A stretch of DNA of 64,000 nt from assembly GCA_002269645.1 (NCBI GenBank), contig NIVC01002886.1, forward strand, positions 18,309 to 82,308. The letters run 5' to 3'. The stretch is from Macrostomum lignano. Lineage: Eukaryota. Below, one piece after another: positions 7,338 to 31,600 of the stretch (the first letter of the stretch is position 1; each line of letters begins with the position of its first letter). The notes under the pieces are model-generated. The model had not been told where the DNA came from. It made no database searches and was given only the letters and a program-made list of their open reading frames with translations. The position numbers and the translations under genes are program-made.

Positions 7338-8522
7338 CATTGTCTACTGTAGGGCGTATGCCGATTATTAACAGATAGTCCAATAGACGTGTCTAAGCTG
7401 ACACCTAAATTTACAAAAATCAGACAAAATGGAAAAAATGTATTCAATAATGAAATTCTAAAAATAAGTGCATTAAATCGTCAATACGAGTAAAACTCAA
7501 ACTCAAAGCATTGTTCGCCAGACATGATTATTATTGGGTGTGAAACTGTACTATGACCCAGTGTATATTCCCACTGTATATTCTCAAAGCGTTAAAAAGG
7601 CTCAACTAAAAGTCCTAGGCAGATGGGATGGCGACAAGTTACTTTTATTAATATTCCAAGACTACTATTCCCCAGCAGACACAGGACACAGGGAGATTAC
7701 GAGTTGAAAGATTAGGGAATAAACTTTGTTTTACTCATAGTCCGCCGTAAAATTGATTGAAGAATAATAATCCGCGCAATCTGCCTGCCGGTTTTGGAAA
7801 ATGAATTTAGTCAAGAGCTCCCCGACCCATCCAAGCGGTTAGGAAGACTTCCGTCTTCAAAGGTCTAAAGGTCTGGGGGGGGAGCTGCGGGAAAGCTAGA
7901 GCAAAGAGATGTTGCGTGTCTCAATGGTCTAGTTAGTTAAAGTCAATTAGCCGCTATTGAGGACCCCTGACGAAAATACTGCACATATCTTTAGTCCTGT
8001 GTGGGAGGTTGGAAGCCGAAACTATGCCAAAAGTTCCATATTTTGAAAATCACTTTGGATCCGATTCTATTCCTCATCAAGCACTGAGGCCGTCTGTTCT
8101 ATCTTGGGGACATGTTGTAAAAAAATCCTTCTAAAGGAGATTAAAGAAGAAGACAAAGAGAAGCCGAGTCAAAGCAAAGAGCGAGGATATTCCGAGACGG
8201 TCGCACTTCCGCTGCCCCAGAGTGTAGGGACAATCTCCATCTACTTATACCCCTGATTAGATCCGCAGTTCTTCTTGGGTTCCTGGAGTTCTCGAATGTG
8301 GCAAGTCCTGGGCGAGTCCGAAATCGAATAATACGCCAATTCCCTGGGCGGCTCCTCAAAGGCTCGAATGGAATGAACGCCTGTCCAGTGCATGCAGAAG
8401 AAATGTATGACAGTTCTTTTAGATAATACTATATACACAGTTGAGCCCTATCAGTGCGTTTCACGAATGATTGTTGCTTGTACATACAAGCTAGTAAAAG
8501 TGCAATTGTACAAGCTGCAAAA

Positions 8523-9119
8523 CAACAACAACAACAACAACAGAATACGTAGTTAGCGTCACAGGGCGCGCTTCAAGGCCGGGTCGCGAATGAACGCCAC
8601 GCCGCCGGCCGAATCCGGGGCGCTGGCGTTAGCCAGCAGGCAGTCGACGAAACGCCGAGTGCGCGCCTGCCCTCGCCGGTAGAGTGCCTGCAGCGTTAGC
8701 AGCAGCACCTCCTGCACCGGCTGTGGGCAGTACGACTTGGCGCGGATGATGTGGCCTGCCAGCTGGAGTCGCCGACGGCGCAACAGGTCGCTTGGACGGA
8801 CCAGGTGATACAAAGCCGGGTTGGTCACTCGCTCGTAGCCGATCTTGAAGGCGGCGCGCAGCAGGCTAGCATGCACCGCATCAACTTTTTGCTCGAGCGA
8901 CTCCGTCAGCGTCCAGGTCTCGGCGTTGTACAGCAGGACGGTCTCGATCACCGCCTGGAACAACGCCGGCGCCGCCCTCTGGCGGTCAGGTAAGGCCTCG
9001 GACTGCAGGACTGCCCTCACAGAACGAAAGGCAGCCCAGGCAAGCCCGCGGCGACGCCGCAAATCCTCGCGGACGCCGGGAACCAGACCGCCGAGGTAGA
9101 CGAACTGCTGACAACGCGG
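8523..9119 (-). mobile_element. 5'-truncated non-LTR retrotransposon (RTE/RTEX group), 3' end of the RT ORF
   Basis: Translation contains FVYLG, LAWAAF, VLLYNAETWTLT and RRRRLQLAGHIIR, the RTE-type thumb/C-terminal region. It ends in a (TTG)n tail. Flanks are AAGCTGCAAAA (8512-8522) and AAGCTGTAAAA (9120-9130), an 11-bp TSD with one mismatch. Confidence 0.9.
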
Positions 9120-9667
9120 AAGCTGTAAAAAGAACGATTGTAACCACGAGGCATGTGGAGCTGTAGGCATGTGGATGATGTGGCGGGCCAGCTGGAGTGC
9201 TACAGCTGGTCGCTTGAACTGATCAGGCGATTGATCAGGACTGAGTATGCGTCACACTACCCAGAAGATAAAATTATTTCTAATACATTCTAGAGCGCGA
9301 AACAAATGTCTGTCCTAGTAAGCACTAGCGCATTTAATTCGGCGAAGAACAATAGTGGAAAATGTGGCGTCTGCTTGCTCACTGTCAATAAGAACAGAGA
9401 GAGACAAGTGCTGGCGTACTTGCTTTGCAAATACTCGAATTAGGAATCTTACTCCGCGCAAGGGAGAAACAGATAGCATCCGACGTGTCGTATTATCAGA
9501 GCTGCAAAAACCTCCATAAGTGCAACTCAATGCACTCATCTAGAACCCTTTGCACGCAGAAACAATGGGTCTACATACTTCCCACAGCCCTTTTTCTCTT
9601 TAAATAACTTAAGAACTCATTTCTTCCTGCTTGCGAAGCTGATGCTGCAATCCTTATCTAACCCTTG

Positions 9668-10480: not shown

Positions 10481-11177
10481 GACAAAATTTGCTAGCATTC
10501 GAAAGGTCATTAAGGTCAGCTCGCAGACAAACCAACAAACCAGTTGCTTTTTAGCGCTTGGGGAATGGAACTAAATGTTTACTATGCCTTAATGATCAGA
10601 GTTTAAATCACTACAAAGTGCGTTATTCACGCGACGATATCATTTTTATATTTTTGTACTTATTAAGGTTTAAAAAACCTTGTAATTTCGTGTTTACAAT
10701 AGATTAATCGGGTATTACGTATTTTCAATACTGGTTGGTAATATATGGGAGTTTTTTTATGTTCTCAGCACACTGGTATTTTACAAGCAAAATAGTTTTG
10801 CCGATTCTTTCTACTCAGTAGGCAAATCTTCCGTCTCGAAATCAGTCTCTATGCGCCGCGTGCTGCAGAATACGGACTGGCGGATTAACCCCGCTATCTG
10901 GCAGTCTGCGACCCGCGCACCTGACGTTATTTAATGCCGCTAATCCCACTTGTCAGCCGGTCCGACGCCCTCGCCTACTTCCAAATGAAATTTAGAAATT
11001 GATTTTTTGTCGAGTCAGCGACTGTGAAATCAGACTCGGGTCAGGTTGAGCCAGAAAAGCTTCTTTGAGCGTCAACGGGAGGCCACTCGAATAGGTGCGT
11101 TGTCTCAATTATTCCCCATCCCTGAGAGGCCGCCCAATCCCAAAGCGCTGGCAACCCATCCAGGCTTGACAATCCTT

Positions 11178-11225
11178 ATTGGTTGTGCCTTGAAGCCAGC
11201 CCCTCTCGCCTCTGTGGGTATAAAA
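11178..11225 (+). promoter_or_regulatory. Putative core promoter of the neuropeptide gene (reverse CCAAT plus TATAAAA)
   Basis: ATTGG at ~11178-11182 and TATAAAA at 11219-11225, ~110 nt upstream of the ATG. Motif match only. Confidence 0.4.
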
Positions 11226-11331
11226 CAGATCGACTTGGCTGCAATCCGACCCCCTCTTCGCTAGATCATCAGTCCCCTATATCCCCTAACGCACAGACTC
11301 ATCCCGTAGAGACTCGACCTCGGCAGCAAAA

Positions 11332-12142
11332 ATGCAATGCAGCGTTCTGGCGCCAATGCTGGCGCTTCTGATGGCGGCGCTTATCTGTGCATCGTCCACT
11401 CGAGCTGACGTGAGTCACTTCTGACCTCTCACTTTTGTCTTTAATATTCTTACCAGTGAATGCCAAGTTGCACCGGTTCGATACTGCCTGATCACCTTTG
11501 TAGTCGCTTCATCACCACGGTGCGTCAGACCAGGAGCTTCAAGATCAAACCGAAAAGAGGGCCTACTTTGATCCGATGGGATACGGCAAGAGGGCCTACT
11601 TCGATCCCATGGGATCCGGCAAGAAGAAGAGGGCCTACTTCGATCCCATGGGATACGGCAAGAAGAAGAGGGCCTACTTCGATCCCATGGGATACGGCAA
11701 GAAGAAGAGGGCCTACTTCGATCCCATGGGATACGGCAAGAAGAAGAGGGCCTACTTCGATCCCATGGGATACGGCAAGAAGAAGAGGGCCTACTTCGAT
11801 CCCATGGGATACGGCAAGAAGAAGAGGGCCTACTTCGATCCCATGGGATACGGCAAGAAGAAGAGGGCCTACTTCGATCCCATGGGATACGGCAAGAAGA
11901 AGAGGGCCTACTTCGATCCCATGGGATACGGCAAGAAGAAGAGGGCCTACTTCGATCCCATGGGATACGGCAAGAAGAAGAGGGCCTACTTCGATCCCAT
12001 GGGATACGGCAAGAAGAAGAGGGCCTACTTCGATCCCATGGGATACGGAAAGAAGAAGAGGGCCTACTTCGATCCCATGGGATACGGCAAGAAGAAGAGG
12101 GCCTACTTTGATCCCATGGGATATGGCAAGCGCAGTACTTAG
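11332..12142 (+). CDS. Neuropeptide precursor (238 aa) encoding 14x AYFDPMGY-amide and 1x AYFDPMGS-amide; exons 11332-11409 and 11504-12142
   Basis: Exon 1 is MQCSVLAPMLALLMAALICASSTRAD (hydrophobic signal peptide) and ends gac|GTGAGT. A 94-nt phase-0 intron ends ctttgtAG. Exon 2 reads SLHHHGASDQELQDQTE-KR, then 15 peptides, each ending in Gly (amide donor) and flanked by KR or KKKR convertase sites; stop TAG at 12140-12142. Confidence 0.93.
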
Positions 12143-13074
12143 CAAAATCATCATTTGAGACAGCAAATTTGAATTTATTCAGCTTGTCAACCAACAAATA
12201 CAAAAATGTCCAGATATTGACTTCGTCCTTGAAACTGTTAGAAGCGAGGAGCGACGAGCCGTGAAAGACTCTGACTCGTCTTTGTTTCTGGCTCAACAAA
12301 GACTTCTCTAAGTTGCGCCACAGTTTTCTAGCTCTTTGTTCAGAGTGTATTAAACCAATGAAAGATTTCGAAATATAAAAAACAACAAGGCACTTTTATG
12401 TAGCACAAATAAGCCTTGATGGCTTGGTCCTCAAGTGTGCACTGTAAAAATGCAATTAAGGATTCAGTTAGTTAATCATGGCATTGATGTCGTTTGCATA
12501 TGCCTGACGATTAGAAAGTTAGATTAACATTCTATGCTACTCAAGACCAGTAGTATTTCAACAACTGTGTTAAAAGTATCGACAAGAAGCTTATCTCGTA
12601 TTAATATTTTACTGAGCAGCATCAGAGATTCACAAGTAACCAAATCTTGCACGAAAAAGCAGAAAGTCGTTCCGTTTCGAAGATTTTTTGAAGAAACTTG
12701 ATGAAGCCAAATCTGTAGCAATTTCTTGACTTGAAATCGCTTTCAACTTTTCTTCTTTGGCTTTGTCTTTTCTGTGCGTCTTTCTGCCAGCTGCACGAAG
12801 TGTTTTCGCCTTTGTGTCCTCAGTTGACGTCGCCCTTTCTGGGTACATCTTTAGGCAATCCTGGCATTATGGGTATTAAAGGCTTAGAGTGGGCTGAAAC
12901 ACGCCAGTTTGTCTCTAAGGTGCGGAACAGAGAGGCTAAACAGGATTACCTATTGCCAATCAAAATGATTGACACTTCCCTGCGTGTCTGACAGTAACCT
13001 GGCGGACAACTGCTTGAAGTGCGATGGTTCATTAATCCAGAAATTAATGAATTTCTCTCTAGTTTTAGTTCCTC

Positions 13075-13444
<370 letters not shown>

Positions 13445-13662
13445 ACTTATTTCCTGTTTCTCTAAGATGTCTTCCCATTAGCATAAAGCATACTACTATG
13501 AAGTAGCACAGAGCATGCTCCCCTAACTTATTACAGAGCCAGTTTTAACCACCCAATGGAATCAAGAAACCGCCTACTCTATTGCTAGCAGCTATAAGAC
13601 CCCAATCAACTCAAACCCAGGCACTCCAGCTTCCCGAAGCCCAGCTCACTCCCAGCCCCAAG

Positions 13663-16600
13663 ATGGACAAGCCCGGCATTCGCTACCAGAAGCTGCGCGA
13701 GCGAGCGCAAAAACGCGACAGCGTGGACTCACGACAGTCAAGCGACGCGAGCTCGGGCAGTCAGACCCAACTGCTCGGAGCCGCCACGGGCGTCGGAGCT
13801 TCGGGAACGTCGACAGTGGAGACAGCAGTGACGGAACAACAGCAGCAGCGAATCCAGGTGCCCTCGGTTCAGGTTGAGTCAGCGGGCGCCTCGTCCGCCA
13901 GCCTGAGCTCCCCAGTAGCCGGGGGCGGCGCGGCCTCCCAGTCTCCAGTCGCTTCATCATCTTCATCTCCTTCTGGAGGCTCGAACTCAGGACCTATGCA
14001 GGACCAACAGCCGCCACAGCCGCCGCCGCCGCCGCCGCCACTTCAACAGGAGGACAGCGTCCGCTCGGAGGAGGGCACCGTGGCTACCGAAACTACAACC
14101 GACGAGGCGGGCGGAGGCGGCCGCGTGCTGCAGCACTGCCGCAGGGGCGAGTGGGCCAACGTGGAGGCGCAGCTGAGAAAAGGCGATTTCCATCCGTGGG
14201 AGCTGGCGGAGGCTGAGGAGGTTGGATGGGAATAATTGTTGCTGTTGTCATTATTGATATCATGTCTCATAGATTTTGGCTCATAGGTCCTGGCTCATAG
14301 GTCATAGCTAATTCATCGTAAGTCATAGATCGTGGCTCATAAACCATTGCTCATACGTCATAACTCATAAATCATCGCTTATAGATCATGGCTCATAGAT
14401 CGTGGCTCCTAAATCATCGCTTATAGATCATGGCTCAAAGATCGTGGCTCATAAATCATCGCTCATAGATCATGGCTCATAGATCGTGGCTCATAAATCA
14501 TCGCTCATAGATCATGGCTCATAGATCGTGGCTCATAAATCATCGCTTATAGATCATGGCTCATAGATCGTGGCTCATAAATCATCGCTCATAGATCATG
14601 GCTCATAGATCGTGGCTCATAAATCATCGCTCATAGATCATGGCTCATAGATCGTGGCTCATAAATCATCGCTTATAGATCATGGCTCATAGATCGTGGC
14701 TCATAAATCATCGCTTATAGATCATGGCTCATAGATCGTGGCTCATAAATCATCGCTTATAGATCATGGCTCATAGATCGTGGCTCATAGATCGTGGCTC
14801 ATAAATAATCGCTCATAAATCATTGCTCATAGCTCATAGCTCATAAATCAGAGCTCATCAATGACAGCCCAGATACCATAGCAGCACTCTTAACACAGCG
14901 ACTCCATGAAATGTTCTTTACGGCGAGAAATGAAACAGCCGTTTGTTTTAATGCTTCTCCACCAACAACTCGATGGACTATCAAAAATGAATTTCAGGGC
15001 AGCGGCGAGACGCCCCTCATGATGGCCTGCCGCGACAACAAACTGGTGATTGTCGACAGACTGCTCGAGAGCGGCGCCGGAGTTTTCGAGAAATGCTCGG
15101 TCAGCTCTACTGATTCTGCACTCTCCCTCTCGCACTCTCCCTCTCGCACTCTCCCTCTCGCACTCTCCCTCTCGCACTCTCCCTCTCGCACTCTCCCTCT
15201 CGCACTCTCCCTCTCGCACTCTCCCTCTCGCACTCTCCCTCTCGCACTCTCCCTCTCGCACTCTCCCTCTCGCACTCTCCCTCTCGCACTCTCCCTCTCG
15301 CACTCTCCCTCTCGCACTCTCCCTCTCGCACTCTCCCTCTCGCACTCTCCCTCTCGCACTCTCCCTCTCGCACTCTCCCTCTCGCACTCTCCCTCTCGCA
15401 CTCTCCCTCTCGCACTCTCCCTCTCGCACTCTCCCTCTCGCACTCTCCATCTCGCACTCTCCCTCTCGCACTCTCCCTCTCGCACTCTCCATCTCGCACT
15501 CTCCCTCTCGCACTCTCCATCTCGCACTCTCCCTCTCGCACTCTCCCTCTCGCACTCTCCCTCTCGCACTCTCCCTCTCGCACTCTCCCTCTCGCACTCT
15601 CCCTCTCGCACTCTCCCTCTCGCACTCTCCCTCTCGCACTCTCCCTCTCGCACTCTCCCTCTCGCACTCTCCCTCTCGCACTCTCCATCTCGCACTCTCC
15701 CTCTCGCACTCTCCCTCTCGCACTCTCCATTTCTCACTCTCCATTTCGCACTCTCATTTCACACTCTCATTTCACACTCTCCATTTCGCACTCTCCCTCT
15801 CGCACTCTCCCTCTCGCACTCTCCCTCTCGCACTCTCCCTCTCGCACTCTCCCTCTCGCACTCTCCCTCTCGCACTCTCCATCTCGCACTCTCCCTCTCG
15901 CACTCTCCCTCTCGCACTCTCCCTCTCGCACTCTCCATTTCTCACTCTCCATTTCGCACTCTCATTTCACACTCTCATTTCACACTCTCCATCTCGCACT
16001 CTCCCTCTCGCACTCTCCATCTCGCACTCTCCATCTCGTACTCTCCCTCTCGCACTCTCCCTCTCGCACTCTCCCTCTCGCACTCTCCCTCTCGCACTCT
16101 CCCTCTCGCACTCTCCCTCTCGCACTCTCCCTCTCGCACTCTCCCTCTCGCACTCTCCCTCTCGCACTCTCCCTCTCGCACTCTCCCTCTCGCACTCTCC
16201 CTCTCGCACTCTCCCTCTCGCACTCTCCATTTCTCACTCTCCATTTCGCACTCTCATTTCACACTCTCATTTCACACTCTCCATCTCGCACTCTCCCTCT
16301 CGCACTCTCCCTCTCGCACTCTCCATTTCTCACTCTCCATTTCGCACTCTCATTTCACACTCTCATTTCACACTCTCCATCTCGCACTCTCCCTCTCGCA
16401 CTCTCCATCTCGCACTCTCCATCTCGTACTCTCCATCTCGCACTCTCCATCTCGTACTCTCCATCTCGCACTTTCCATCTGGCACTCCTTGAACTCAGTT
16501 TAAGACAAATTTTAATTGGCCCATGAGGTTGGTTTTCGCTGCTGATACCCTGTCTCACTGGGAACGGAATCTTTACAACAAAAACCAATTTCTTCGATAG

Positions 16601-19600
16601 AAAAAATGTCTACCCTTAGCACAACAAAGGTTCTGGTCCCCATTCAAATTGCAACTCCCCCAGTGTCCCGTTGCCATTGACAACCCAGCGCACACACAAC
16701 AATAATGCATTATAAATCTCTGTAGCACAGTCAAATAAAGTAGAGTGATGAGGTAGGCTAGGCAACATATAAAGCCAGTTCATAAGGTTTCTAGGAATTG
16801 GTCCGCTGGGATTTGAAGCCAAGGGCTTATAGAGAGCAAGGCTCGTGCACCGGATGCTCCGTGAGTTGCTGCCTTGGCACTGAATGGTAAAGGTAACAGA
16901 ATTTATGGGTGCTTTGAGAAAGGCATTGTGTGCGTTTCTCAATAGCTGTATTTCTTTTCAATTTAGTTCTACAAGAGCCGGTTCGCATCCATCACTTTTT
17001 TTAATTCTTTCAGATTCTCAGATTCTAAGCTGGTTTTCACAATAGTAGAAGCTATTTATTTGGACCCATGATGCTTGGGATCTGTACGTGACATCATTGA
17101 TAACTTTAGCACTCATTTAAGCTGTTTTCTTTCAAATAAGGGGTTGTAGTCTAATGGTCGGACTCAGGACTTGAAAGGTCGGGGGTTCGATTCCCGATCC
17201 CACTCGGAACAATTTGAGTCTTTGAGCAAGATATATGACTCTGCATTGCTTCAGTTCACCCAGCTGTAAAATGGGTGCCAGCATTAGCTGGGGTAATTGT
17301 GTGTTGGCGTACTGAAGTCCTTGGACTGAACAGCCGTACGCAGCCTTCAGACGCGCCGCGCAATAGCTGCGGCTGAGCTGTCGGTTGCACATCTGTCTAT
17401 TGGGGCAGGCGTAATCAATTATTACCATTTATTATTAAACATTATTTCTTTAAAAATATAAAATAATAAAAATACCCAAAATTTTCGAAGTACTGCATCA
17501 CGAGCGCAATCTCTCTGTCACTGTATTTCAGGACGGTCGAACGGCCCTGCACTTTGCTGGCCAATACGCCAAGGACGACATCATCAAGCTGCTGCTGGCC
17601 AGGAAAGCCGACCCAAATCAGACTGGAGGGGTGAGAGATCGCAACACATTACCGCCAGGAGCTTTAAAGATTACCGGTTTACATTTGCGGGTCAAATATT
17701 GCTCAAATCAATGTGCAGTTAATTCAGATCCACAGTTGCCACAAATAAGGACCAACCTTAGGGTGTACACTGCCTGACAGAGGGTGTACACTGCCTGACA
17801 GAGGGTGTACACTGCCTGACAGAGGGTGTACACTGCCTGACAGAGGGTGTACACTGCCTGACAGAGGGTGTACACTGCCTGACAGAGGGTGTACACTGCC
17901 TGACAGAGGGTGTACACTGCCTGACAGTGAGAAAGTTAGGCCCGCTGTACACTCTGAGTGAGTACACGCCTGCTTACATATCCTTGTACATGTGCGTTCT
18001 CAGAGGTTAGCGGAATGGATATAAATGATTGCCAGCTGCTACAACTCTTATTGTAGTCTGCTCTGATTGGACGCGGGACAGGCGGATGAGTTGTGACGTC
18101 ATTCTCTAAATTATAGTCCCTCTCTACCCTTCCTTGTCGCCTATTGGCTAGCAAGCATTCCAATCGAAAGGTCATACCCAGCGCCATCCCAATACTGCCC
18201 ACCGCAGCCCCTGGAGCAGACGTCACTGCACTACGCCTGCCAGAGGTCCCAGTCCGCACTGCCGGCCGTATTGACCCTCATAAAGGTGACGAAAAACGGC
18301 CGATTGGTGACAGATAAGGTAAAAAACATATCTAATCTTAAGGTAGAATTGTTGGTAAAAACATGATATAAAAGTGCCCATCCACCCCAGCCTGGCAACA
18401 TCCCACTGTACTACGCGGTGGACAGCGGCAACGCCTTAGTGATGAAGGAGCTGCTGGACCGGGACACGGATGTGCAGGTGCGCTGGCGCCACGGGGCGTC
18501 TGGCAACACCGCCCTGCACGTGGCGGCCGGCAAGCGCGACCTCGAGATGGTGAAGATTCTGTGCGACTCTGGGGCCGACATCAATGCGCAGAATGTGAGG
18601 TTGCTGGGATAGATATGATGGAGTTTTTCAGGCATCTAAGCATTTAAGATGCACTGTACTAGCGACAAAAATTACCGATGTAACAAGTGCAGACTACGCG
18701 CTCCTTTGTAGAATGCCGGTCAGACTCCGCTCCACATTAGCGCCAATGAAGGCGACGAGGCTGTGGTGCGGTTCCTGCACTCCAACAAGGCCGATGCCAG
18801 CATTCTGGACAAGGTGCTGCTGTTTATACGTTTGTTTAGGGCTGGGGAACTAGTTCGAAGGGAAGAGGCGTATAGAGGATCCAGGTCTCTCCGTTGGGCT
18901 TTATCTGGAGTCCGAAATTGACGCTAAGTCCACAAGCTCCATCCCAGCTCCATCCCAGCTCCATGCAAGCTCCATGCAAGCTCCATGCAAGCTCCATGCA
19001 ATCTCCATCCCAGCTCCATCCCAGCTCCATCCCAGCTCCATCCAAGCTCCATTCCAGCTCCATCCCAGCTCCATCCCAGCAACATTCCAGCTCCATTCCA
19101 ACTCCATCTCAGCTCCATCCCAGCTCCATCCAAGCTCCATCCCAGCTCCATCCCAGCACCATCCCAGCTCCATCCCAGCTCCATCCCAGCTCCATCCAAG
19201 ATCCATTCCAGCTCCATCCCAGCTCCATCCCAGCAACATTCCAGCTCCATTCCAACTCCATCCCAGCTCCATCCCAGCTCCATCCAAGCTCCATCCCAGC
19301 TCCATCCCAGCTCCATCCAAGCTCCATCCCAGCTCCATCCCAGCTTCATCCCAGCTCCATCCAAGCTCCATTCCAGCTCCATCCCAGCTCCATCCCAGCA
19401 ACATTCCAGCTCCATTCCAACTCCATCCCAGCTCCATCCCAGCTCCATCCCAGCTCCATTCCAGCTCCATTCCAGCTCCATTCCAACTCCATTCCAACTC
19501 CATTCCAACTCCATCCCAGCTCCATCCCAGCTCCATCCCAGCTTCATCCCAGCTCCATTCCAGCTCCATCCAAGCTCCATTCCAGCTCCATCCCAGGTCC

Positions 19601-22600
19601 ATCCCAGCTCCATCCCAGCAACATTCCAGCTCCATTCCAGCTCCATTCCAGCTCCATCCCAGCTCCATCCCAGCTCCATTCCAGCTCCATTCCAGCTCCA
19701 TCCCAGCTCCATCCCAGCAACATTCCAGCTCAATTTTAGCTCCCACTAAGCTCTGTCCAAGGCTTTTGCTAGAGCCTGAAGTTGACGCTCAGAGGCTCAT
19801 ATTCTAGCGCAAAATTTGGCATATGATTTTGAGTGAGTCAGAGCTTTAGTTTCCAACCGAAAGAATACAGTTAACCCAGTTGGCGGTGTCCTGATTGAAG
19901 AAGTGAAACTTCTAGATAAGATCGATAAATCCTCTTGGACTCTTTTCCAACGCCCCTACAGCAAGACCGCAGCCCTCTGCACATGGCGGCCGAACGTGGC
20001 CAGACAAAAATAGTGGAGCTGCTAATTGACAAGTTCAAATGCAACGTGCTGGCCCGCACCAAGGACGGCAGCACTTTGATGCACGTGACCTCACAGTCGG
20101 GATTCCCCGAGACTACCATGGCCTTTCTTCGACGCGGAGTGCCGCTGCACATGCCGAACAAGAGCGGCGGAGTCTGCCTGCACGCGGCGGCCAAAAGCGG
20201 TCACGCCAGCGTTGTCCGCAGCCTCCTGGAGAAGGGCGCCAACGTGAACGCGGTGACGAAGGACCGGCTGACTGCGCTGCATGAAGCCGTGGCCAGGGGC
20301 CACCCGGCCGTAGTGGAAACCCTACTCGGCTTCGGGGCGCAGGTTCGTGCTGGAGCACTACAATTAGTCCGTGAAGTGCAATTAGCCTGTGGAATGCAAT
20401 TAGTCTGTGGAATGCAATTAGTCTGTGGAATGCAATTAGTCTGTGGAGTGCAATTAGCCTGTGGAGTGCAATTAGCCTATGGAATGCAATTAGTCTGTGG
20501 AATGCAATTAGTCTGTGGAGTGCAATTAGCCAGTGGAGTGCAATTAGCCTGTGGAGTTCAATTAGTCTGTGGAATGCAATTAGTCTGTGGAGTGCAATTA
20601 GCCTGTGGAGTTCAATTAGTCTGTGGAATGCAATTAGTCTGTGGAATGCAATTAGTCTGTGGAATGCAATTAGTCTGTGGAGTGCAATTAGCCTGTGGAG
20701 TTCAATTAGTCTGTGGAATGCAATTAGTCTGTGGAGTGCAATTAGCCTGTGGAGTGCAATTAGCCTATGGAATGCAATTAGTCTGTGGAATGCAATTAGT
20801 CTGTGGAGTGCAATTGGTCTGTGGAATGCAATTAGTCTCTGGAGTGAAATGGGTTTGGACTATGAATAATAATAATAATAAATAATTGATTACACCTGCC
20901 CCAATTGGGCCAGATGCGCAACTGACAGCTCAGCCGCAGCTATTGCGCGGCGCATCTGAAGGCTGCGTACGGCTGTTCAGTCCAAGGACTGGGGGGTCGC
21001 CACACACCCTCAATTACCCCAGCTAATGCTGGCACCCATTTTACAGCTGGGTGAACTGACGTCGAAAATTTAATATAACAAGAACCATACAGTAGTTTGT
21101 GAAACCCCCCACCCCTCAATAACACAAATTGTTCCGAGTGGGATCGGGAATCGAACCCTCGACCTTTAAGTCGGAGTCCGACGCTCTAACCACTAGGTTA
21201 CACCGCCCTATAAAGCACCACAAAAAGTCAGGATTGTCCTTATTAAACAAAGTGTATTTGAGATGGAATTTTCAGTACTAGTTGTCAAGGTTGGAAAACG
21301 GCCTCCGGGGCTTGAATGGTTGCTATCAGTGTCAAACTGTGGTAGGTCTCAAATGTCCGGAGAGCCAACGATAAGGCTTGTTGTACGATCTGCTCCCATG
21401 AATTCTAACTCGCCGAGTGTGTGCATGACTGACAATGACAAGGTCAGGGGTTAATGTACATCTTGTGTGAGCGCGGCCTGAGTACGTATTCCCCAACTAC
21501 CTCATTACTCAACAGGTGGACGTCAAGGGCGGCGAAGACGAAGATACTCCGCTGCATCTGGCGGCTCGGACCAGCGGCGGCGAGCGCTGCGCCGAGATGC
21601 TGCTGAAGAGCGGCGCCAACGTCAACAAGGCCAACCGGCTGGGCCAGACGCCGCTGCACACGGCGGCCAAAGGCGGCAACGTCGACATGCTGCTGGCGCT
21701 GCTGGCCGAGGCCGGCGACCCGACTCGCGTCTGCCAGCAGGTGAGAATTTCCTCCGACTCTGAGACTGATCCTTCGTTTAGTCTTTAGTCTATATGGGGT
21801 TGCAGTCTAGTGGTTAGAGAGTCGGGCTCACGACTTGCAGGTCGTGAGTTCGATTCCCGATCCCATCGGAGCAATCTGAGTCCTTGAGCAAGACACTTAC
21901 GAAGTAACTCTGCATTGCTTCTGTAAAATGGGTGCCAGCATTAGCTGGGGTAATTGAGGGTGTGTGTGGCGACCCCCCAGTCCTTGGACTGAACAGCCGT
22001 ACGCAGCCTTCGGATGCGCCGCGCAAATAGCTGCGGCTGAGCTGTCGGTTGCACATCTGGCCCAATTGGGGCAGGTGCAGTCAATTCCTGTGCAGCTTGC
22101 AGTGGGCACCGGTGGCACAACAGGAACTGCACTCGCATTGCTCCTACAGTGTAGACTTTCTCATCGCTATGGGCCTTAAACCGTCTTCATATTTTGCACT
22201 TTACACTGATTGCATGCTTGACCCGAAAATGAGTCAGACTTTCGTTAACACTGAAATGACCTACTACGCTTGTATTTGGGTGTTTGGTAAGCGTTTGTAG
22301 TTCCACTGGCTATGCGGAGAGATTTGCACCCAGCGAATATTTAAGTATTCAAAGAAATGCCTTCTATTCAATTTGACACCTTGCTAGGGCAACAGTCCGC
22401 TGCACCTGGCCGCCAGACACTGTCGCTATCCGGTTGCTAAGGCAATTATTGAGCACGTTGAGTCAACAAAATCGCATCACGACGCCGTGCACCTGGTTAA
22501 CCTTGGCAACAAGGAGGGCGAAACAGCGCTTCACTACGCTGCGGAACTGTCCAAAGATAAGGCAGGCGGCGACTTCGACGACACGGACCTGGTGAAGCTG

Positions 22601-25600
22601 CTGCTGCGCTACGAGGGCGACATCAGCGTGCCCACGAAATTCGTGAGAAAGCGGCTTCTTTGACGGCATAGAATTGTTGGTGCTGGCTGCGGGCACAAAG
22701 CCAACATGGATCAGACCGCTGATTGAAGCATATCTGAAATTTCTTTTCAGACTGCGGAGACGCCGCTGCACTATTGCGCCAGATCGGGCAATGAGGACAT
22801 CCTGCTGGAGATTGTCAAATTTCTTGACCACAGGGTCCAGCTGGTGGTCAACAGGCAGTCGTCGGTGAGGAAGGCTACTCCTAAGCTCCTAAGCTTCATC
22901 AGAGCTTTATCTCAGCTCCCTCCCAGCTCCATCCCAGCTCCATCCAAGCTCCATCCCAGCTCCATCCAAGCTCTATCCAAGCTCCATCCAAGCTCCATCC
23001 AAGCTCCATCCAAGCTCCATCCAAGCTCCATCCAAGCTCCATCCCAGCTCCATCCAAGCTCCATCCAAGCTCTATCCAAGCTCCATCCAAGCTCCATCCA
23101 AGCTCCATCCAAGCTCCATCCCAGCTCCATCCAAGCTCCATCCAAGCTCTATCCAAGCTCCATCCAAGCTCCATCCAAGCTCCATCCAAGCTCCGTCCCA
23201 GCTCCATCCAAGCTCTATCCAAGCTCCATCCAAGCTCCATCCAAGCTCCATCCCAGCTCCATCCAAGCTCTATCCAAGCTCCATCCAAGCTCCATCCAAG
23301 CTCTATCCAAGCTCCATCCAAGCTCCATCCAAGCTCCATCCAAGCTCCATCCAAGCTCCATCCAAGCTCTATCCAAGCTCCATCCAAGCTCCATCCAAGC
23401 TCCATCCCAGCTCCATCCAAGCTCTATCCAAGCTCCATCCAAGCTCCATCCAAGCTCCATCCAAGCTCCATCCAAGCTCTATCCAAGCTCCATCCAAGCT
23501 CCATCCAAGCTCTATCCAAGCTCCATCCAAGCTCCATCCAAGCTCCATCCCAGCTCCATCCAAGCTCTATCCAAGCTCTATCCAAGCTCCATCCAAGCTC
23601 CATCCAAGCTCCATCCAAGCTCCATCCAAGCTCCATCCAAGCTCCATCCAAGCTCTATCCAAGCTCCATCCAAGCTCCATCCAAGCTCCATCCAAGCTCC
23701 ATCCCAGCTCCATCCAAGCTCTATCCAAGCTCCATCCAAGCTCCATCCAAGCTCCATCCCAGCTCCATCCAAGCTTTATCCAAGCTCCATCCAAGCTCCA
23801 TCCAAGCTCTATCCAAGCTCCATCCAAGCTCCATCCAAGCTCCATCCCAGCTCCATCCAAGCTCTATCCCAGCTCCATCCAAGCTCCATCCAAGGTCTAT
23901 CCAAGCTCCATCCAAGCTCCATCCCAGCTCCATCCCAGCTCCATCCAAGCTCTATCCAAGGTCTATCCAAGCTCCATCCAAGCTCCATCCCAGCTCCATC
24001 CCAGCTCCATCCCAGCTCCATCCCAGCTCCATCCCAGCTCCATCCAAGCTCCATCCAAGCTCTATCCAAGGTCTATCCAAGCTCTATCCAAGGTCTATCC
24101 AAGCTCCATCCCAGCTCCATCCCAGCTCCGTCCCAGCTCCATCCAAGCTCCATCCAAGCTCCATCCCAGCTCCATCCAAGCTCCATCCAAGCTCCATCCA
24201 AGCTCCATCCAAGCTCTGTTTAACTCAATTTCACGCTACGTACACAAAAGCTGCGTTATCTGCTCCAATTTCTCTGCATGCACCCAATTCAGTAGTTTGT
24301 AAACATTCCCTAAAGTTTTCCACATTCTCATGCCCAACTCAGCATAAACAGAACAAACCGACTCACTCCCTCCCAAATCGCTACAGAATGGCTGGTCGCC
24401 TTTGCTCATCGCCAGCGACTGCGGCCGGGAGGGCATCGTGCAGATCCTGTTAAAGAAGCACGCTAGAGTTGATGTGTTCGACACGGTGAGTGGCGCTTTG
24501 GATCCGGGCGCCTTTTAGAAACTTTTTACTACTTTTTATTAGCAGCCTCTTCTGGAGCACTCCAATGACTCTTCTGGAGCACTCCAATGACTCTTCTGGA
24601 AGACTCCAATGACTCTTCTGGAGCACTCCAATGACTCTTCTGGAAGACTCCAATGACTCTTCTGGAAGACTCCAATGACTCTTCTGGAGCACTCCAATGA
24701 CTCTTCTGGAAGACTCCAATGACTCTTCTGGAGCACTCCAATGACTCTTCTGGAAGACTCCAATGACTCTTCTGGAAGACTCCAATGACTCTTCTGGAGC
24801 ACTCCAATGACTCTTCTGGAGCACTCCAATGACTCTTCTGGAAGACTCCAATGACTCTTCTGGAAGACTCCAATGACTCTTCTGGAAGACTCCAATGACT
24901 CTTCTGGAAGACTCCAATGACTCTTCTGGAGCACTCCAATGACTCTTCTGGAGCACTCCAATGACTCTTCTGGAGCACTCCAATGACTCTTCTGGAAGAC
25001 TCCAATGACTCTTCTGGAAGACTCCAATGACTCTTCTGGAAGACTCCAATGACTCTTCTGGAACACTCCAATGACTCTTCTGGAAGACTCCAATGACTCT
25101 TCTGGAACATTCCAATGACTCTTCTGGAACAGTCCAATGACTCTTCTGGAACAGTCCAATGACACTTCTGGAAGAATTCAATGACTCTTCTGGAAGACTT
25201 CAATGACTCTTCTGGAAGACTTCAATGACTCTTCTGGAACGCTCCTATGAGTCTTCTGGCAAATGTGACTTCTCTCATTCCAGAAAGGATTCGCCGCGCT
25301 GCACCTGGCTGCCAAGAACAACCACGCCAATGTGGTCCGCAGCCTGCTCCGCATGAACGCTTTCGTGAACGCCAAGAGCAAGGAGTGCTACACACCGCTG
25401 CACCTGGCCGCCCAGGAGGGCCACAACGAGGTGGTGAAACTGCTTCTCAAACAGGATGGCGTGGAGGTGGACGCCAGGACTCTGGTGAGTGCGTTACTCA
25501 CTTTACTTCAGTCCTAATTTAGTCACTTCAATCCTAATTTAGTCACTTCAGTCCTAATTTAGTCACTTCAGTCCTAATTTAGTCACTTCAGTCCTAATTT

Positions 25601-28600
25601 AGTCACTTCAGTCCTAATTTAGTCACTTCAGTCCTAATTTAGTCACTTCAGTCCTAATTTAGTCACTTCAGTCCTAATTTAGTCACTTCAATCCTAATTT
25701 AGTCACTTCAGTCCTAATTTAGTCACTTCAGTCCTAATTTATTCACTTCAGTCCTAATTTAGTCACTTCAGTCCTAATTTAGTCACTTCAATCCTAATTT
25801 AGTCACTTCAGTCCTAATTTAGTCACTTCAGTCCTAATTTAGTCACTTCAGTCCTAATTTAGTCACTTCAGTCCTAATTTAGTCACTTCAGTCCTAATTT
25901 AGTGTCTTTACAGTTTTTTTCTGTCACTGCAGCATTCAAAGACGCCACTGCACCTGGCTGCTCAGAGGGGCCACAAAGAGGTCTGCGAGACCCTTGTCGA
26001 TCACAATGCCGACACAAAAGCTACCGACAATGTAAGGCGTTAATTTTCAGTGAATATATAGTTATTCAAGCTCTATAATTGTAATTTTTTGTATATTTGC
26101 GTCAACTTCTGCAGAACGGCCAGACTCCCTTACATCTGGCCGCTGAGCACGACAAGTCTCACGTTGTGAAAATGTTCCTGCGAAAGAAAGACATTGTGAC
26201 TCTGGCCAGTGCGGTAAGACTTCTTATTTGCTCTGGATGTGGCAGAGACTCAAATAATTTATAGTTGGCTATGAGCGTTTTACTCTATTCTGATTGGCTC
26301 TGGGTGTGTTCATGAGTTCTGATTGGCTCTCAGTGTGCTCACGAGAATTTACTCGCTTCTGATTGGCTCTGAGTGTGTTCACGAGAATTTACTCGGTTTG
26401 GATTGGCTCTGAGTGTGTTCTCGAGAATTTACTCGGTTCTGATTGGCTCTGAGTGTGTTCACGAGAATTTACTCGGTTCTGATTGGCTCTCAGTGTGTTC
26501 ACGAGAATTTACTCGCTTCTGATTGGCTCTGAGTGTGTTCACGAGAATTTACTCGCTTCTGATTGGCTCTGAGTGTGTTCACGAGAATTTACTCGCTTCT
26601 GATTGGCTCTGAGTGTGTTCACGAGTTCTGATTGGCTCTGGGACTTGTAAAAGATATTTAAATCGATTCTGATATACTCAAGTTTATACGAACTGCAAGT
26701 GAATATTGTCTAAACAATTATAGCTAACAATAAATCCCAAAAAAATCGTTACAACTTTTCAGGATGACGTACGTTTTAATGGCTTAGCTAATTCCTAAGC
26801 TGTTGCTTTTAGTCATGTTAATTTAAGTTAAATCAATCACAAAATTTAAGTTTCTTGATGCACTTCAATCCTTTGCCTTTGCTGCTTTCAGTTATTTTAT
26901 GATTAGTTGCCGTCCTGAGGTTCTCAGGCACACCAGTTGCAGAAGTTGCAAATGCAGAAATTTATGTCCAACTCCATGCTAGAACCCGACTCTCACTCTC
27001 TTCACTGGCAATCTGCCTCGCTCTCTTAATCTTGTAATCTGACTCTCACTCTCTCCCTCGCAATATTACTCTCACCCCGCCTCTCTCTCTCAGTGTCTCG
27101 CAATCTGACTCTCCACCTCTCTCTCCGTCTCGCAATCTTATCTTATCAGACCCTCACTCTCTCCTAAAGATACCTCAGTCTATTGCCAGTAGTGGCACCA
27201 TCTATTTAGTGGCACAGACGGACCCAATAAGTAGCCCTACTGACCTACCCATCATTACTTATTCCCCATCGTCCGTAACCTTTGCAGAAAGGCATGACCT
27301 GCGCCCACATCGCGGCCAGCAAGGGTAGCATCTCTGTGATCAACGAGCTACTCAGATCGAACAGGAGCCTCCTGTGCACGGGGAAGATCAAAACGAATGG
27401 ATGCACCGCCTTGCACCTGGCCGCTCAGGAGGGACACGAGAAGGTCGTTCGGCTTTTGGTCGAGGCCGGGGCGTCGCCGTCCGAGGAGAACTCTGAGGGC
27501 CTGACCCCGCTGCACCTGGCCGCTCAGAGTGGGCACTCCAAGGTGTGGGAGAGTTGGGTGGCTAGAGTGGGTGGGGTAGAGTGGGTTGGGTAGAGTGGGT
27601 TGGATAGAGTGGGTTGGGTAGAGTGGGTTGAGTAGATTGGGTTGGGTAGAGTGAGTTGGGTAGAGTGGGTTGGATAGAGTGGATTGGGTAGAGTGGGTTG
27701 GATAGAGTGGGTTGGGTAGAGTGGGTGGGGTAGAGTGGGTTGGGTAGAGTGGGTTGGGTAGAGTGGGTTGGGTAGAGTGGGTTGGGTAGAGTGGGTTGGG
27801 TAGAGTGGGTTGGGTAGAGTGGGTTGGGTAGAGTGGGTTGGGTAGAGTGGGTTGGGTAGAGTGGGTTGGGTAGAGTGGGTTGAGAAGATTGGGTTGGGTA
27901 GATTGGGTTGGGTAGATTGGGTTGGGTAGAGTGGGTTGGGTAGAGTGGGTTGGGTAGATTGGGTTGGGTAGAGTGGGTTAGGTACCGTTAATTTGGTAGA
28001 GTGGGTGAGATATAGTAGTTTGGTAGAGTGGGTGAGATATAGTACGAGTAGTTTGGTAGAGTGAGTGAGATATAGTAGTTTGGTAGAGTGAGTTTAAGTG
28101 GGCGGGAGCATAAAGTGTTACAGTAGAGAAGGCAAGGGCAGCAATGCATTGATGGTGAAAGACTTATAATATTCGCATCAATTATTCAACCCCTCAATCG
28201 ATCTGTTCCAATCCAGGTGCTGCAAGCCCTGAAGGAGAAGGTGGACCTGCGAATCGCTTCGAAGAAGTCCGGCCTAACGCCGCTGCACATCGCTGCGCAC
28301 GCCGGCAAGCAGGAGTTCGTGCAGGAGATTCTCACCAAGGTGCCCGCAAATTTGGCCTCATTGAAGCCGAAGGACCACAGTCTGGTCAAGGAAATGGTTG
28401 CTGACGTGAGCTCAGTTTTAAATGTTACTGTGGCTATTTCGAACTCTGGGCCTTCTCTGTAGTTTTGGGCCGATACTGTCCCATGACATAATAGTGTTGC
28501 TTCCTACTAACTATTGATTTCCAGTACGGATTCACACCGCTTCACCTGGCCAGCCAGAGCGGCCACGAGAGCCTGGTCAGGTACCTGCTGAATAGCACCG

Positions 28601-31600
28601 GGGTCAAAGTGGACTCGGCCACTATCAAGCACGTAAGTCTAAAATGCAAATCATTAATAATTGGCATGTTGATTCCCGGACTCAAATTCGATCTCGCCTC
28701 TACCTCTGAACCAATCAGGGCATGATTCCCTTGCACCTGGCCGCCCAGAACGGCCAGACTAACGTTGCCAGCTTGCTGCTGAGCCGAGGAACCAATCAGG
28801 TGCGGCTGGCCGACAGCCACGGGCGAACCTCGCTGCACTGGGCGGCCAACAAAGGCCACTACGATATGGCCGCGCTGTTGGTTGGTCAGGGCGGCGACGT
28901 TAACTGCAGGGACCAGGTGATCTCGGGGAAGACTTCCGACCACTGACTGATTGATTACTATTATATGTGCTTACAACCTCACTCCTTAATTGCATCCACC
29001 ACCTCACTCCTTAATTGCACCCAACACCTCACTCCTTTATTTGCATCCACAACCTCACTCCTTAATTGCATCCGCCACCTCACTCCTTAATTGCATCCGC
29101 CACCTCACTCCTTAAATGCACCCACCACCTCACTCCTTAAATGCACCCACCACCTCACTCCTTAAATGCACCCACCACCTCACTCCTTAAATGCACCCAC
29201 CACCTCACTTCTTAAATGCACCCACCACCTCACTCCTTAAATGCACCCACCACCTCACTCCTTAAATGCACCCACCACCTCACTTCTTAAATGCACCCAC
29301 CACCTCACTTCTTAAATGCACCCACCACCTCACTCCTTCATTGCATCCACCACCTCACTCCTGTATTGCATCCACCACCTCACTCCTTAAATGCCCCCCA
29401 CCTCACTCCTGTATTGCATCCATCAACTCACTCCTTCATTGCATCCATCACCTCACTACTTAATTGCACCCCCACCTCACTCCTTAAATGCCCCCACCTC
29501 ACTCCTTAAATGCCCCCACCTCACTCCTTAAATGCACCCACCACCTCACTCTTCAATTGTGTGCATCTACGAATTCACTCATCATGCCAATCCCACATCT
29601 CGAACGTGAAAAACCTTTTTCATTCCATCCGCCGACACATCCATGAGTATCCACCCAATAACCACTAGAAGTAACGATGTTATCTGTGATAAAACGGTAA
29701 CTTCTAGAGGTCCTTGAATCCACCACTTCACCAAAGTCAAACACCAAACCGAACCCGACAGAACAACTGGACACCGTTGCACTACGCGGCTAAGATGGGC
29801 CACCTTCGTGTAGTTCAGCTACTAATAGACTCCAAAGCCAATTGCGAAGCTGAGACCAAGGACGGGAAGCTTCCGGTTGCCTTCGCAGCCGAGAGCAACC
29901 ACGTGGCTGTGGTCAGCTTCCTGTTAAAAGAGCGGCACAACACCGCCCACCTGATGGAGGACTGGAAGTTTCTGTACGACATCATGCAGTGCAGCAAGGT
30001 AACATTCTATAAAATAATATTTTAACAATAAAGATATTATTACACGTGATAGCATGTAGGTGTTAAAATTTTCGCCTTGGTGGCTGGACCCAAACAGAGG
30101 AGTGAGGTGATGGGTGCAAGTGAAGAGTGAGGTGGTGGTGCAATTGAGGAGTAAGGTGGTGGATGCAATTGAGGAGTGGGGTGGTGGGTGCAAGTGAAGA
30201 GTGAGGTGGCGGTGCAATTGAGGAGTGGGGTGGTGGGCGCAAGTGAAGAGTGAGGTGGTGGTGCAATCGAGGAGTGGGGTGGCGGGCGCAAGTGAAGAGT
30301 GAGGTGGTGGTGCAATTAAGTAGTTGGGGTGGTGGGTGCAAGTGAAGAGTGAGGTGGTGGGTGCAATTAAGTAGTTGGGGTGGCGGGTGCAAGTGAAGAG
30401 TGAGGTGGTGGTGCAATTGAGGAGTGGGGGTGGTGGGTGCAAGTGAAGAGTGAGGTGGTGGTGCAATTAATGAGTGGGGGTGGCGGGCGCAAGTGAAGAG
30501 TGAGGTGGTGGTGCAATTGAGGAGTGGGGGTGGTGGGTGCAAGTGAAGAGTGAGGTAGTGGTGCAATTGAAAAGTGGGGGTGGTGGGTGCAAGTGAAGAG
30601 TGGTTAATGGCGCTAAGCAGCAGTTCAGAGAGACCTGCCTGTCCTTCGGTGAGGAGGATTGAGACGAGGTTCCTCCTCGGGTCAGTGCCATTACGAAGCC
30701 AATAAAAAGCAATAAAATTTGATTCACTCGCAGGCAAGCGGCAACAAGACTGTGGAGGAGTTCATTCTGGCATCGCCGGCTCCAGCCGAGACTGCCGCTA
30801 AGCTGTCGCGCAAATTCCAGATACTCTCCGAACGAGAGAAGGAGCGCGCCAAGGAGCTGATGCTGATCGGCAAGCACTGCGAGCTGATGTGCGCCGAGCT
30901 GGTCGCTGTGGCGTCAACAGAGAACGGCAGCGAAGGCGCCGCCAGCCTATTAAAAGCGGTGGACAGCCGCGGCGTGCAGTTTCTGGACATCCTACTAGAG
31001 ACGGAGCAGAAGGAGGTGATCGCTCATCCGGCTGTTCAGCGGTACCTCACCGACCTGTGGAAAGGCAACCTGGATTGGCCCACCTGGAAATTCCTGTTGC
31101 TATTTACCGTATTCCTCCTCCTGCCTCCAGTCATGATGGTGTTCAGCCTGCCTTGGCGGCGGTACCGGTACCAGCGCAAGCCGGTGATCAAGTTCATCGC
31201 CTACCTGATCGCGCACTTCCACCTGATTGCCCTATTCATGCTGGTAGCTATTGAGCCCGGCTGGCTGGGCTATCCGTATTGGACTCGACACGACCTCATA
31301 CCCACCTGGGTGGAGTGCCTCCTGCTGCTGTGGCTCAGCGGCCAGCTCGTCTCCGAGCTCACTAATCCGGCCGATCGATCGGGACTGGGCATTTTCAAGG
31401 TATGCAGACTTTGGCATTAGTAAGAGATTAGTAAGATATGCAGTGAGCAGGATTAGTGGTAAATGCCCATCGGCATCGCAGATTTAAGCCATCGATAAAA
31501 GGCAAAGTGAAGAGAAAGTGCGCTCGTAGATTAATTTGCCAAGCCAAGTCCTGAGCAGATGCATCAGAGAAGAACATTGGGCTTTGATGAGTCTTATTCT

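Follow-up and report, generated by a model that had tools for sequence, protein, structure and literature searches.

What kind of gene, if any, lies behind a tandem array that spells a near-identical cleavable peptide fifteen times? The question is raised by a 64,000-nucleotide stretch of the genome of the flatworm Macrostomum lignano (contig NIVC01002886.1, positions 18,309 to 82,308; this whole stretch is called the window hereafter), in which positions 11332 to 12142 were taken, in a sequence-only reading, for a complete precursor of an amidated neuropeptide, AYFDPMGY. That interpretation is supported by the anatomy of the gene, by signs of selection, by a database model and by family relationships. 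Moreover, with a probability of roughly 0.85, the locus is an M. lignano prepropeptide gene of the flatworm NPP-26/SPP-15(-16) 'FDP' neuropeptide family.

A two-exon gene in a repeat-rich window

The coding part of exon 1 (11332..11409; this and all other features of the gene lie on the + strand) comprises 78 nt or 26 codons, begins with the ATG at 11332 and reads MQCSVLAPMLALLMAALICASSTRAD. Judged by its hydropathy, it is a predicted signal peptide: a hydrophobic core occupies residues 5-20, the Kyte-Doolittle 9-residue mean reaches a maximum of 3.0 at residues 10-18 and falls below 0 after residue 19, and small residues stand at the candidate cleavage sites A20, S22 and A25. An in-frame stop is found 15 codons upstream of the ATG, and unspliced read-through of the exon meets a stop after 4 codons. 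The intron (11410..11503; 94 nt, phase 0, GTGAGT...TTTGTAG) has the donor GAC|GTGAGT at 11410 and a pyrimidine-rich 3' end, ...CACCTTTGTAG (TTTGTAG), at 11503, while exon 2 (11504..12142) extends over 639 nt including the TAG stop (12140-12142), its open frame beginning exactly at the acceptor AG. Reading of the sequence and translation of both exons showed the earlier two-exon model, with a signal-peptide exon spliced in phase 0 at 11409/11504, to be correct to the base.

Exon 2 starts with an acidic, His-containing spacer (11504..11560; SLHHHGASDQELQDQTE), after which come the first KR (Lys-Arg) cleavage site, an array of 15 peptide units with a period of 39 nt (11561..12133) and, as read from the sequence, a C-terminal Ser-Thr with the TAG stop (12134..12142). 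The spliced product has 238 aa, consisting of the signal peptide, the spacer (A)DSLHHHGASDQELQDQTE, KR, 15 units of AYFDPMG[Y/S]-G and the C-terminal ST; translation thus confirmed the spacer and the 15 Gly-terminated peptides (14 AYFDPMGY-G and one AYFDPMGS-G), separated by KR/KKKR, which had been described before. On the 5' side, a TATAAAA box (11219..11225), located 113 nt before the ATG and the sole occurrence of this motif within 10900-11332, is a candidate core promoter, whose position would imply a 5' untranslated region of about 80 nt. On the 3' side, a candidate polyadenylation signal, ATTAAA (12349..12354), stands about 210 nt beyond the stop and is the sole AATAAA/ATTAAA in the 650 nt downstream.

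Tandem repeats are abundant in the window, where 75 rows from Tandem Repeats Finder (TRF) merge into 41 arrays amounting to 36% of the sequence; together with a GC content of 47%, this load agrees with a platyhelminth source. Because many of these arrays are open in all six phases, repeat-derived open reading frames and 'GKR' motifs are a real false-positive risk in this genome. The locus could, then, be a non-coding minisatellite which is open by accident in the G-K-K-K-R frame, the 'gene' being an artefact of the repeats: all six frames are open across the AYFDPMGY array as well, and a second array, at 40858-41259, repeatedly spells AGKRR within AGKRRLANV. Nevertheless, the second array has a period of 29/14 nt, so that its frames rotate, whereas the period of the AYFDPMGY array is a multiple of 3 and its frame opens at a canonical acceptor, in phase with the signal-peptide exon. 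G[KR][KR] sites number 15 in this frame, and no other stop-to-stop frame of the window holds more than 7. The array alone is not more than chance would give; the whole anatomy is.

The differences between copies speak against the minisatellite too. By TRF the array has a period of 39, 14.9 copies and 97% matches, and its DNA is identical in 10 of the 12 internal units (units 3-14, except 13), with a single synonymous base differing in unit 13. The octapeptide ends in Y in 14 of the 15 units and in S in unit 2, which starts at 11594. With respect to the consensus the point differences are TTT/TTC (twice), CCG/CCC, GGA/GGC, TAT/TAC and the TAC-to-TCC change of unit 2; five of these six are synonymous, compared with an expectation of about 20% (P about 0.0015-0.003). 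KR follows units 1 and 15 and KKKR the 13 others, both length variants being 6-nt in-frame changes which keep the dibasic site, and the last Arg codon is CGC, not AGG. Departures from the consensus are found in edge copies, as would be expected if unequal exchange had homogenised the array. That the internal repeats are almost identical is due to recent unequal crossing-over or concerted evolution, and the diverged copies at the edges reveal purifying selection on the peptide.

Further evidence came from comparing the spliced precursor with 1.84 billion representative proteins in an exhaustive phmmer search, which returned two strong matches, both from M. lignano: A0A1I8ITX1 (P0113) and A0A1I8IE52 (P0112). 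The first, named "Allatostatin" in UniProt, contains ...AAK-MQCSVLAPMLALLMAALICASSTRAD|SLHHHGASDQELQDQTEKRAYFDPMGYGKR..., the exon 1 product being identical to its residues 336-361; the first 62 residues of the window product are the same in both, including the splice junction (STRAD|SLHHH). In A0A1I8ITX1 the array is collapsed to 4 copies, followed by a frameshift, and since tblastn traces its N-terminal 320 residues to a retroelement at 8.1-9.1 kb of the window, read in antisense, it is a chimeric (retroelement-neuropeptide) and mis-named model; the window holds the clean gene. The retroelement fragment itself spans 8164-9170, with a reverse-transcriptase-like open reading frame at 8559-9170 on the - strand. 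An exact look-up of the 188-aa open reading frame in protein records gave no entry.

A0A1I8ITX1 also bears on unit 2 (11594-11620), in which the TAC-to-TCC change produces AYFDPMGS, with loss of the conserved C-terminal aromatic residue. As this M. lignano model carries Tyr where unit 2 has Ser, the latter is probably an allelic, homeologous or strain difference.

A0A1I8IE52 is a chimeric model as well, with a related retroelement fragment (71% over 28 aa) upstream of the neuropeptide part. It ends with a different signal peptide (MASRNFSTSPLLLLLLLLLGCTAFA), a different spacer and 15 x AYFDPINY-G-KKR, resembling the window gene in its 15 copies, A-Y-F-D-P start, Tyr end, Gly amidation signal and multi-copy layout, and departing from it in its leader and in having IN, not MG, at positions 6-7. 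The synonymous bias, the in-frame length variants, the same junction in A0A1I8ITX1 and this paralogue with 15 x AYFDPINY-Gly establish the locus as a real two-exon gene and no mere minisatellite; as the peptide core recurs with unrelated flanks in the paralogue, and also in trematodes, cestodes and planarians, an accidental frame is hardly credible.

A third paralogous precursor, A0A1I8HWB0/A0A1I8I4A1 (P0145/P0241), has QVYFDPIDN-RKR repeats and differs from the window gene in signal peptide and spacer, in ID at positions 6-7 and in lacking both the Gly and the aromatic C-terminus. M. lignano has, then, at least three paralogous precursors, in which the peptide is conserved while the rest of the precursor diverges. 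Such conservation of the peptide, with leader and spacer diverging, is typical of precursors of bioactive peptides. As a separate observation, the database model A0A1I8I4A1 (P0241) joins a class-A G-protein-coupled receptor (GPCR), whose nearest relatives among solved receptors are those for opioids and somatostatin (E about 1e-29), to the QVYFDPIDN precursor; this fusion implies that, elsewhere in the genome, a peptide-type GPCR gene directly precedes a paralogous FDP precursor.

Given the recent polyploidy of M. lignano and its many gene copies, the window gene might be an intact-looking but silent or redundant duplicate, the functional members being the AYFDPINY and QVYFDPIDN genes. The number of paralogous precursors would fit this, as would the copy with a C-terminal Tyr-to-Ser change at a place where A0A1I8ITX1 has Tyr. 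It is, however, very unlikely: the frame, start codon, splice sites, 15/15 cleavage sites and 15/15 amidation Gly are intact, the variants show synonymous bias, and the TATA and ATTAAA signals are in place.

Relation to the NPP-26/SPP-15 peptides

In planarians, the SPP-15 peptides FDPIMFa and FDPIQFa have been confirmed by mass spectrometry and are paired with Schistosoma npp-26 in Table 3 of Collins et al. 2010 (PMC2953531). The Schistosoma NPP-26 peptides are SYFDPILF, SYFDPIIY, EHFDPIIY, EYFDPIIY, TYFDPIAF and NFDPILF (PMC2953531), and SPP-16 carries QFDPIMY (PMC2953531 supplement). The Smed-spp-15 precursor consists of a signal peptide, one spacer, 8 x KR-FDPIQF-G-KR and FDPIMF-G-R (PMC2953531 supplement). 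It shares with the window gene the signal peptide, the single spacer, the KR-flanked tandem copies with C-terminal Gly, the F-D-P core and the aromatic C-terminus; unlike it, it has hexamers that start at F, without A-Y, with Ile after Pro and Phe at the end, and 9 copies compared with 15. Schistosoma NPP-26 (Smp_071050, Sja-npp-26) and its fluke and cestode homologues carry octapeptides, x-[YH]-F-D-P-I-x-[FY], of the length and register of AYFDPMGY, but lack Gly before the basic site, have Ile at position 6 and hold 5-6 heterogeneous copies instead of 15 near-identical ones.

These relatives were retrieved by the window precursor itself, phmmer matching Sja-npp-26 (P0197; E 9e-5) and an Opisthorchis homologue (P0182; E 1.5e-5), and the planarian SPP-15-type FDPIxF-amide lead, named in the sequence-only reading, pointed to the right family. 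The peptides of P0197 are exactly those listed for Sja-npp-26, and those of the Opisthorchis felineus protein (TGZ67796) are [AS]HFDPIMF and AYFDPIMF. A profile of family units led to a Mesocestoides corti protein (P0244, A0A0R3U1L9) with AYFDPILF/YFDPIIY, a cluster mate of which is named "Neuropeptide-Like Protein"; this profile, built from a 4-unit family alignment, gave 2 matches in all and missed known members, and says little on distribution.

F-D-P is invariant in 17/17 aligned units, and A-Y-F-D-P-M-G-Y, which likewise ends in an aromatic residue, follows the family core [x]-[YHNQ]-F-D-P-I-x-[FY]; Met for Ile at position 6 is its sole change at a conserved position, position 7 (Gly) being variable in the family. 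On a position-specific scoring matrix (PSSM) built solely from non-Macrostomum family members, AYFDPMGY scores 15.9 bits, a value equalled or exceeded by 5/20160 permutations, and AYFDPINY 21.7 bits (2/20160 permutations as good), while control peptides, taken from unrelated multi-copy precursors in the same search, give negative scores. The layout is that of the family, with a signal peptide and several 6-8 residue peptides between dibasic sites, and the source is a platyhelminth, as indicated by the identity over the first 62 residues with M. lignano A0A1I8ITX1. At the sequence level, every feature of the family that was tested is present: layout, motif and register, retrieval of members, and taxon.

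It could be argued that the peptide is a new signalling molecule outside the known families and that its FDP likeness is convergent, considering that the peptides are short, with five to six positions matching, that Met and Gly at positions 6-7 are unique to it, and that unrelated precursors with DP-containing motifs appeared in the same search. Yet the AYFDPINY paralogue bridges the gap, sharing 6/8 positions with SYFDPIIY and scoring as given above, the control peptides from the unrelated matches score negative, and there is agreement in peptide length, C-terminal aromatic residue, multi-copy layout and taxon. Convergence is highly improbable, and membership of the NPP-26/SPP-15 family remains the preferred reading.

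Other identities were considered and rejected. Allatostatin-A, the UniProt label of A0A1I8ITX1, is defined by C-terminal Y/F-X-F-G-L-amide peptides; the 238-aa product contains no FGL motif, and a Pfam scan at E<=10 gave no allatostatin match for either the window product or P0113. The Pfam match to Tal-1A_2A is spurious, being the sum of tiny repeated matches to an 11-residue model. A word-indexed search with the full precursor matched nothing but two bacterial copper chaperones of the PCuAC type, whose metal-binding tail reads GFDPMGYGHGMGH; this was taken for a chance similarity. A scan for bacterial-type promoters and terminators was uninformative for a eukaryote.

The pedal peptide/orcokinin family, whose FDSIG-like motifs had also been invoked, resembles the window gene in the N-terminal motif of its peptides, and to that extent the comparison stands; as regards membership it does not. 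Peptides of that family have about 11-20 residues, an xFDxI/L start and a Gly/Ser-Gly-Phe C-terminal half, and are usually non-amidated. The Elysia crispata precursor KAK3754513, which was recovered here and has PFDPLGSGFI repeats, is likewise multi-copy and has an x-F-D-[PS]-[IL] start between dibasic sites, but peptides of this kind have 11 aa and more, a conserved GSGF-type C-terminal half and no amidation, whereas the window peptide has 8 residues, is Gly-extended and has no such C-terminal half. With the register anchored at the C-terminus, the NPP-26/SPP-15 PSSM gives the PFDPLGSGFI unit of Elysia a score of -20 bits. Planarians reportedly have a separate pedal-peptide-like gene, ppl-1.

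A further group of environmental or unassigned transcripts, P0139/P0240 (Logan ERR6349618-21; loci L002-L004), P0146, P0173 and P0233, encodes multi-copy x-L-P-F-[DE]-x-[ML]-N-[YF]-Gly-KR peptides after a Cys-rich N-terminal domain. These LPFDSMNY-amide-type peptides are superficially like AYFDPINY-amide and are negative on the family PSSM.

Predicted maturation and role of the peptide

The maturation of prohormones proceeds through signal-peptide removal, dibasic cleavage, carboxypeptidase trimming and amidation by PHM/PAL. In the case of the window gene, the precursor would enter the secretory pathway and shed its signal peptide, a PC2-type prohormone convertase would cleave after each KR/KKKR, the basic residues would be trimmed by a carboxypeptidase E-type enzyme, and the exposed C-terminal Gly would be converted into an amide by PHM/PAL. 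Gly precedes every basic site that follows a peptide unit, which predicts amidation throughout, and each precursor would yield 14 AYFDPMGY-NH2 (computed mass 961.400 Da; [M+H]+ 962.408) and one AYFDPMGS-NH2 ([M+H]+ 886.376); for the AYFDPINY-NH2 of the paralogue, [M+H]+ would be 1001.473. As a precedent, the Gly-extended planarian SPP-15 members of the family are amidated in vivo (PMC2953531), while the NPP-26 peptides of cercariae, also confirmed by mass spectrometry, occur as the free acid (-OH) (PMC9495596).

As regards function, the closest information comes from the orthologues. NPP-26 is a marker of a small neuron cluster in Schistosoma mansoni miracidia (PMC11349301). In adults Smnpp26 is neuronal, and its knock-down by RNA interference (RNAi) gives curled, constricted worms of low motility in which gonads and eggs are defective; at 1 uM, NFDPILF elicited Gq signals, measured by bioluminescence resonance energy transfer, on the class-A receptor SmGPCR9 (Smp_244240; PMC13367911). 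In addition, SmNPP26 was paired with the platyhelminth-specific orphan receptor SmGPCR20 (Smp_084270) in a yeast two-hybrid screen (PMC10783048). The family is known and neuronal, with RNAi phenotypes and candidate receptors in S. mansoni. The proposal of a new ligand-receptor signalling system is not supported. By analogy with these orthologues, the M. lignano gene would be expressed in a subset of neurons and its peptide would act on one or several class-A GPCRs, most likely as a neuronal ligand modulating neuromuscular and possibly reproductive physiology.

A non-neuronal product, such as a gland, epidermal or pharyngeal secretion or a pheromone, could be encoded by a secreted multi-copy precursor of the same appearance, and the cell type cannot be assigned by sequence alone. 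Besides the cephalic ganglia and ventral nerve cords, Smed-spp-15 is expressed in sub-epidermal cells and the pharynx (PMC2953531 supplement), and NPP-26 gives a weak signal in the nuclei of the miracidial apical gland (PMC11349301). Nevertheless, orthologue expression is mainly neuronal in 3/3 studied flatworm systems, and the architecture and amidation signal are as in neuropeptide precursors, making a non-neuronal secretion very unlikely.

Against these arguments for a neuropeptide gene of the NPP-26/SPP-15 family, several points have to be weighed. Position 6 is Met in the window peptide and Ile in every other family member, and Gly at position 7 is seen nowhere else. E-values are inflated for repetitive queries, and the same search pulled in unrelated multi-copy precursors. 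Trematode NPP-26 peptides are non-amidated, amidation being predicted here from the Gly and from the planarian SPP-15 precedent. The receptor evidence in S. mansoni was obtained at micromolar concentration, and its authors speak of candidate ligands. Regarding the gene itself, the signal peptide is predicted solely by hydropathy and the -3/-1 rule, A0A1I8ITX1, the database model with the same junction, is chimeric in its own right and could in part be an ab initio prediction, and the predicted gene model and putative function draw on sequence and on orthologues.

Neighbouring features and meaning for the family

The next gene downstream of the neuropeptide gene, at 13582-32403 on the + strand, is one for a large ankyrin-repeat TRP channel of the TRPN/NompC type, with introns packed with tandem repeats. 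Its open reading frame pieces (13582-14235, 19935-20885, 30719-31420 and 31720-32403, all +) contain ankyrin repeats, an Ion_trans domain and an EWKFGRAKL TRP box, and its closest database homologues (nematode and others) show about 55% identity. Rfam gives a weak match to tRNA at 56342-56411 on the - strand (33.4 bits against a gathering threshold of 29), adjoining a perfect 19-nt x 10.9 tandem array at 56394-56600; ARAGORN called no tRNA, and the matched sequence may be a tRNA-derived repeat or a pseudogene.

As for novelty, the exact peptides AYFDPMGY and AYFDPINY were not found in the searchable literature of 8.3 million papers, although an earlier naming in surveys beyond that search is possible, and no account of Macrostomum neuropeptide precursors was present among the literature matches examined. 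The supposition that the peptide was probably uncharacterised may hold for its exact sequence, and does not for its family, which has already been described. What the window contains is a further member of an established flatworm neuropeptide family, new or at any rate unpublicised and wrongly annotated, and no new kind of signalling system.

The window thus provides a clean full-length gene structure for an M. lignano neuropeptide, with all 15 copies, compared with the 4 that precede the frameshift in A0A1I8ITX1. By extending the NPP-26/SPP-15 family to the Macrostomorpha, it makes the family common to macrostomids, triclads, trematodes and cestodes. Since the Macrostomorpha are an early branch within the flatworms, and since AYFDP[MI]xY-NH2 is predicted to be amidated and Tyr-ending there, the ancestral peptide of the family might have been an amidated x-Y-F-D-P-I-x-Y, and the 'flatworm-specific' family might possibly derive from a wider bilaterian one; this is a speculative proposal, with the odds well against it. 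Candidates for such a wider family could be pedal peptides and orcokinins of the x-F-D-x-[IL] type, or else the environmental precursors of x-L-P-F-[DE]-x-[ML]-N-Y-amide peptides (P0139, P0146, P0173 and P0233). As part of the same speculative proposal, the M. lignano paralogues, three precursors that differ in their C-termini, might act through separate receptors.

NPP-26 is under study in schistosomes for its part in regulating motility and reproduction and as a way towards GPCR drug targets. In this context, a free-living model which is amenable to transgenesis and has three paralogous genes, two with predicted amidated products and one without, could help to dissect the pairing of ligands and receptors.

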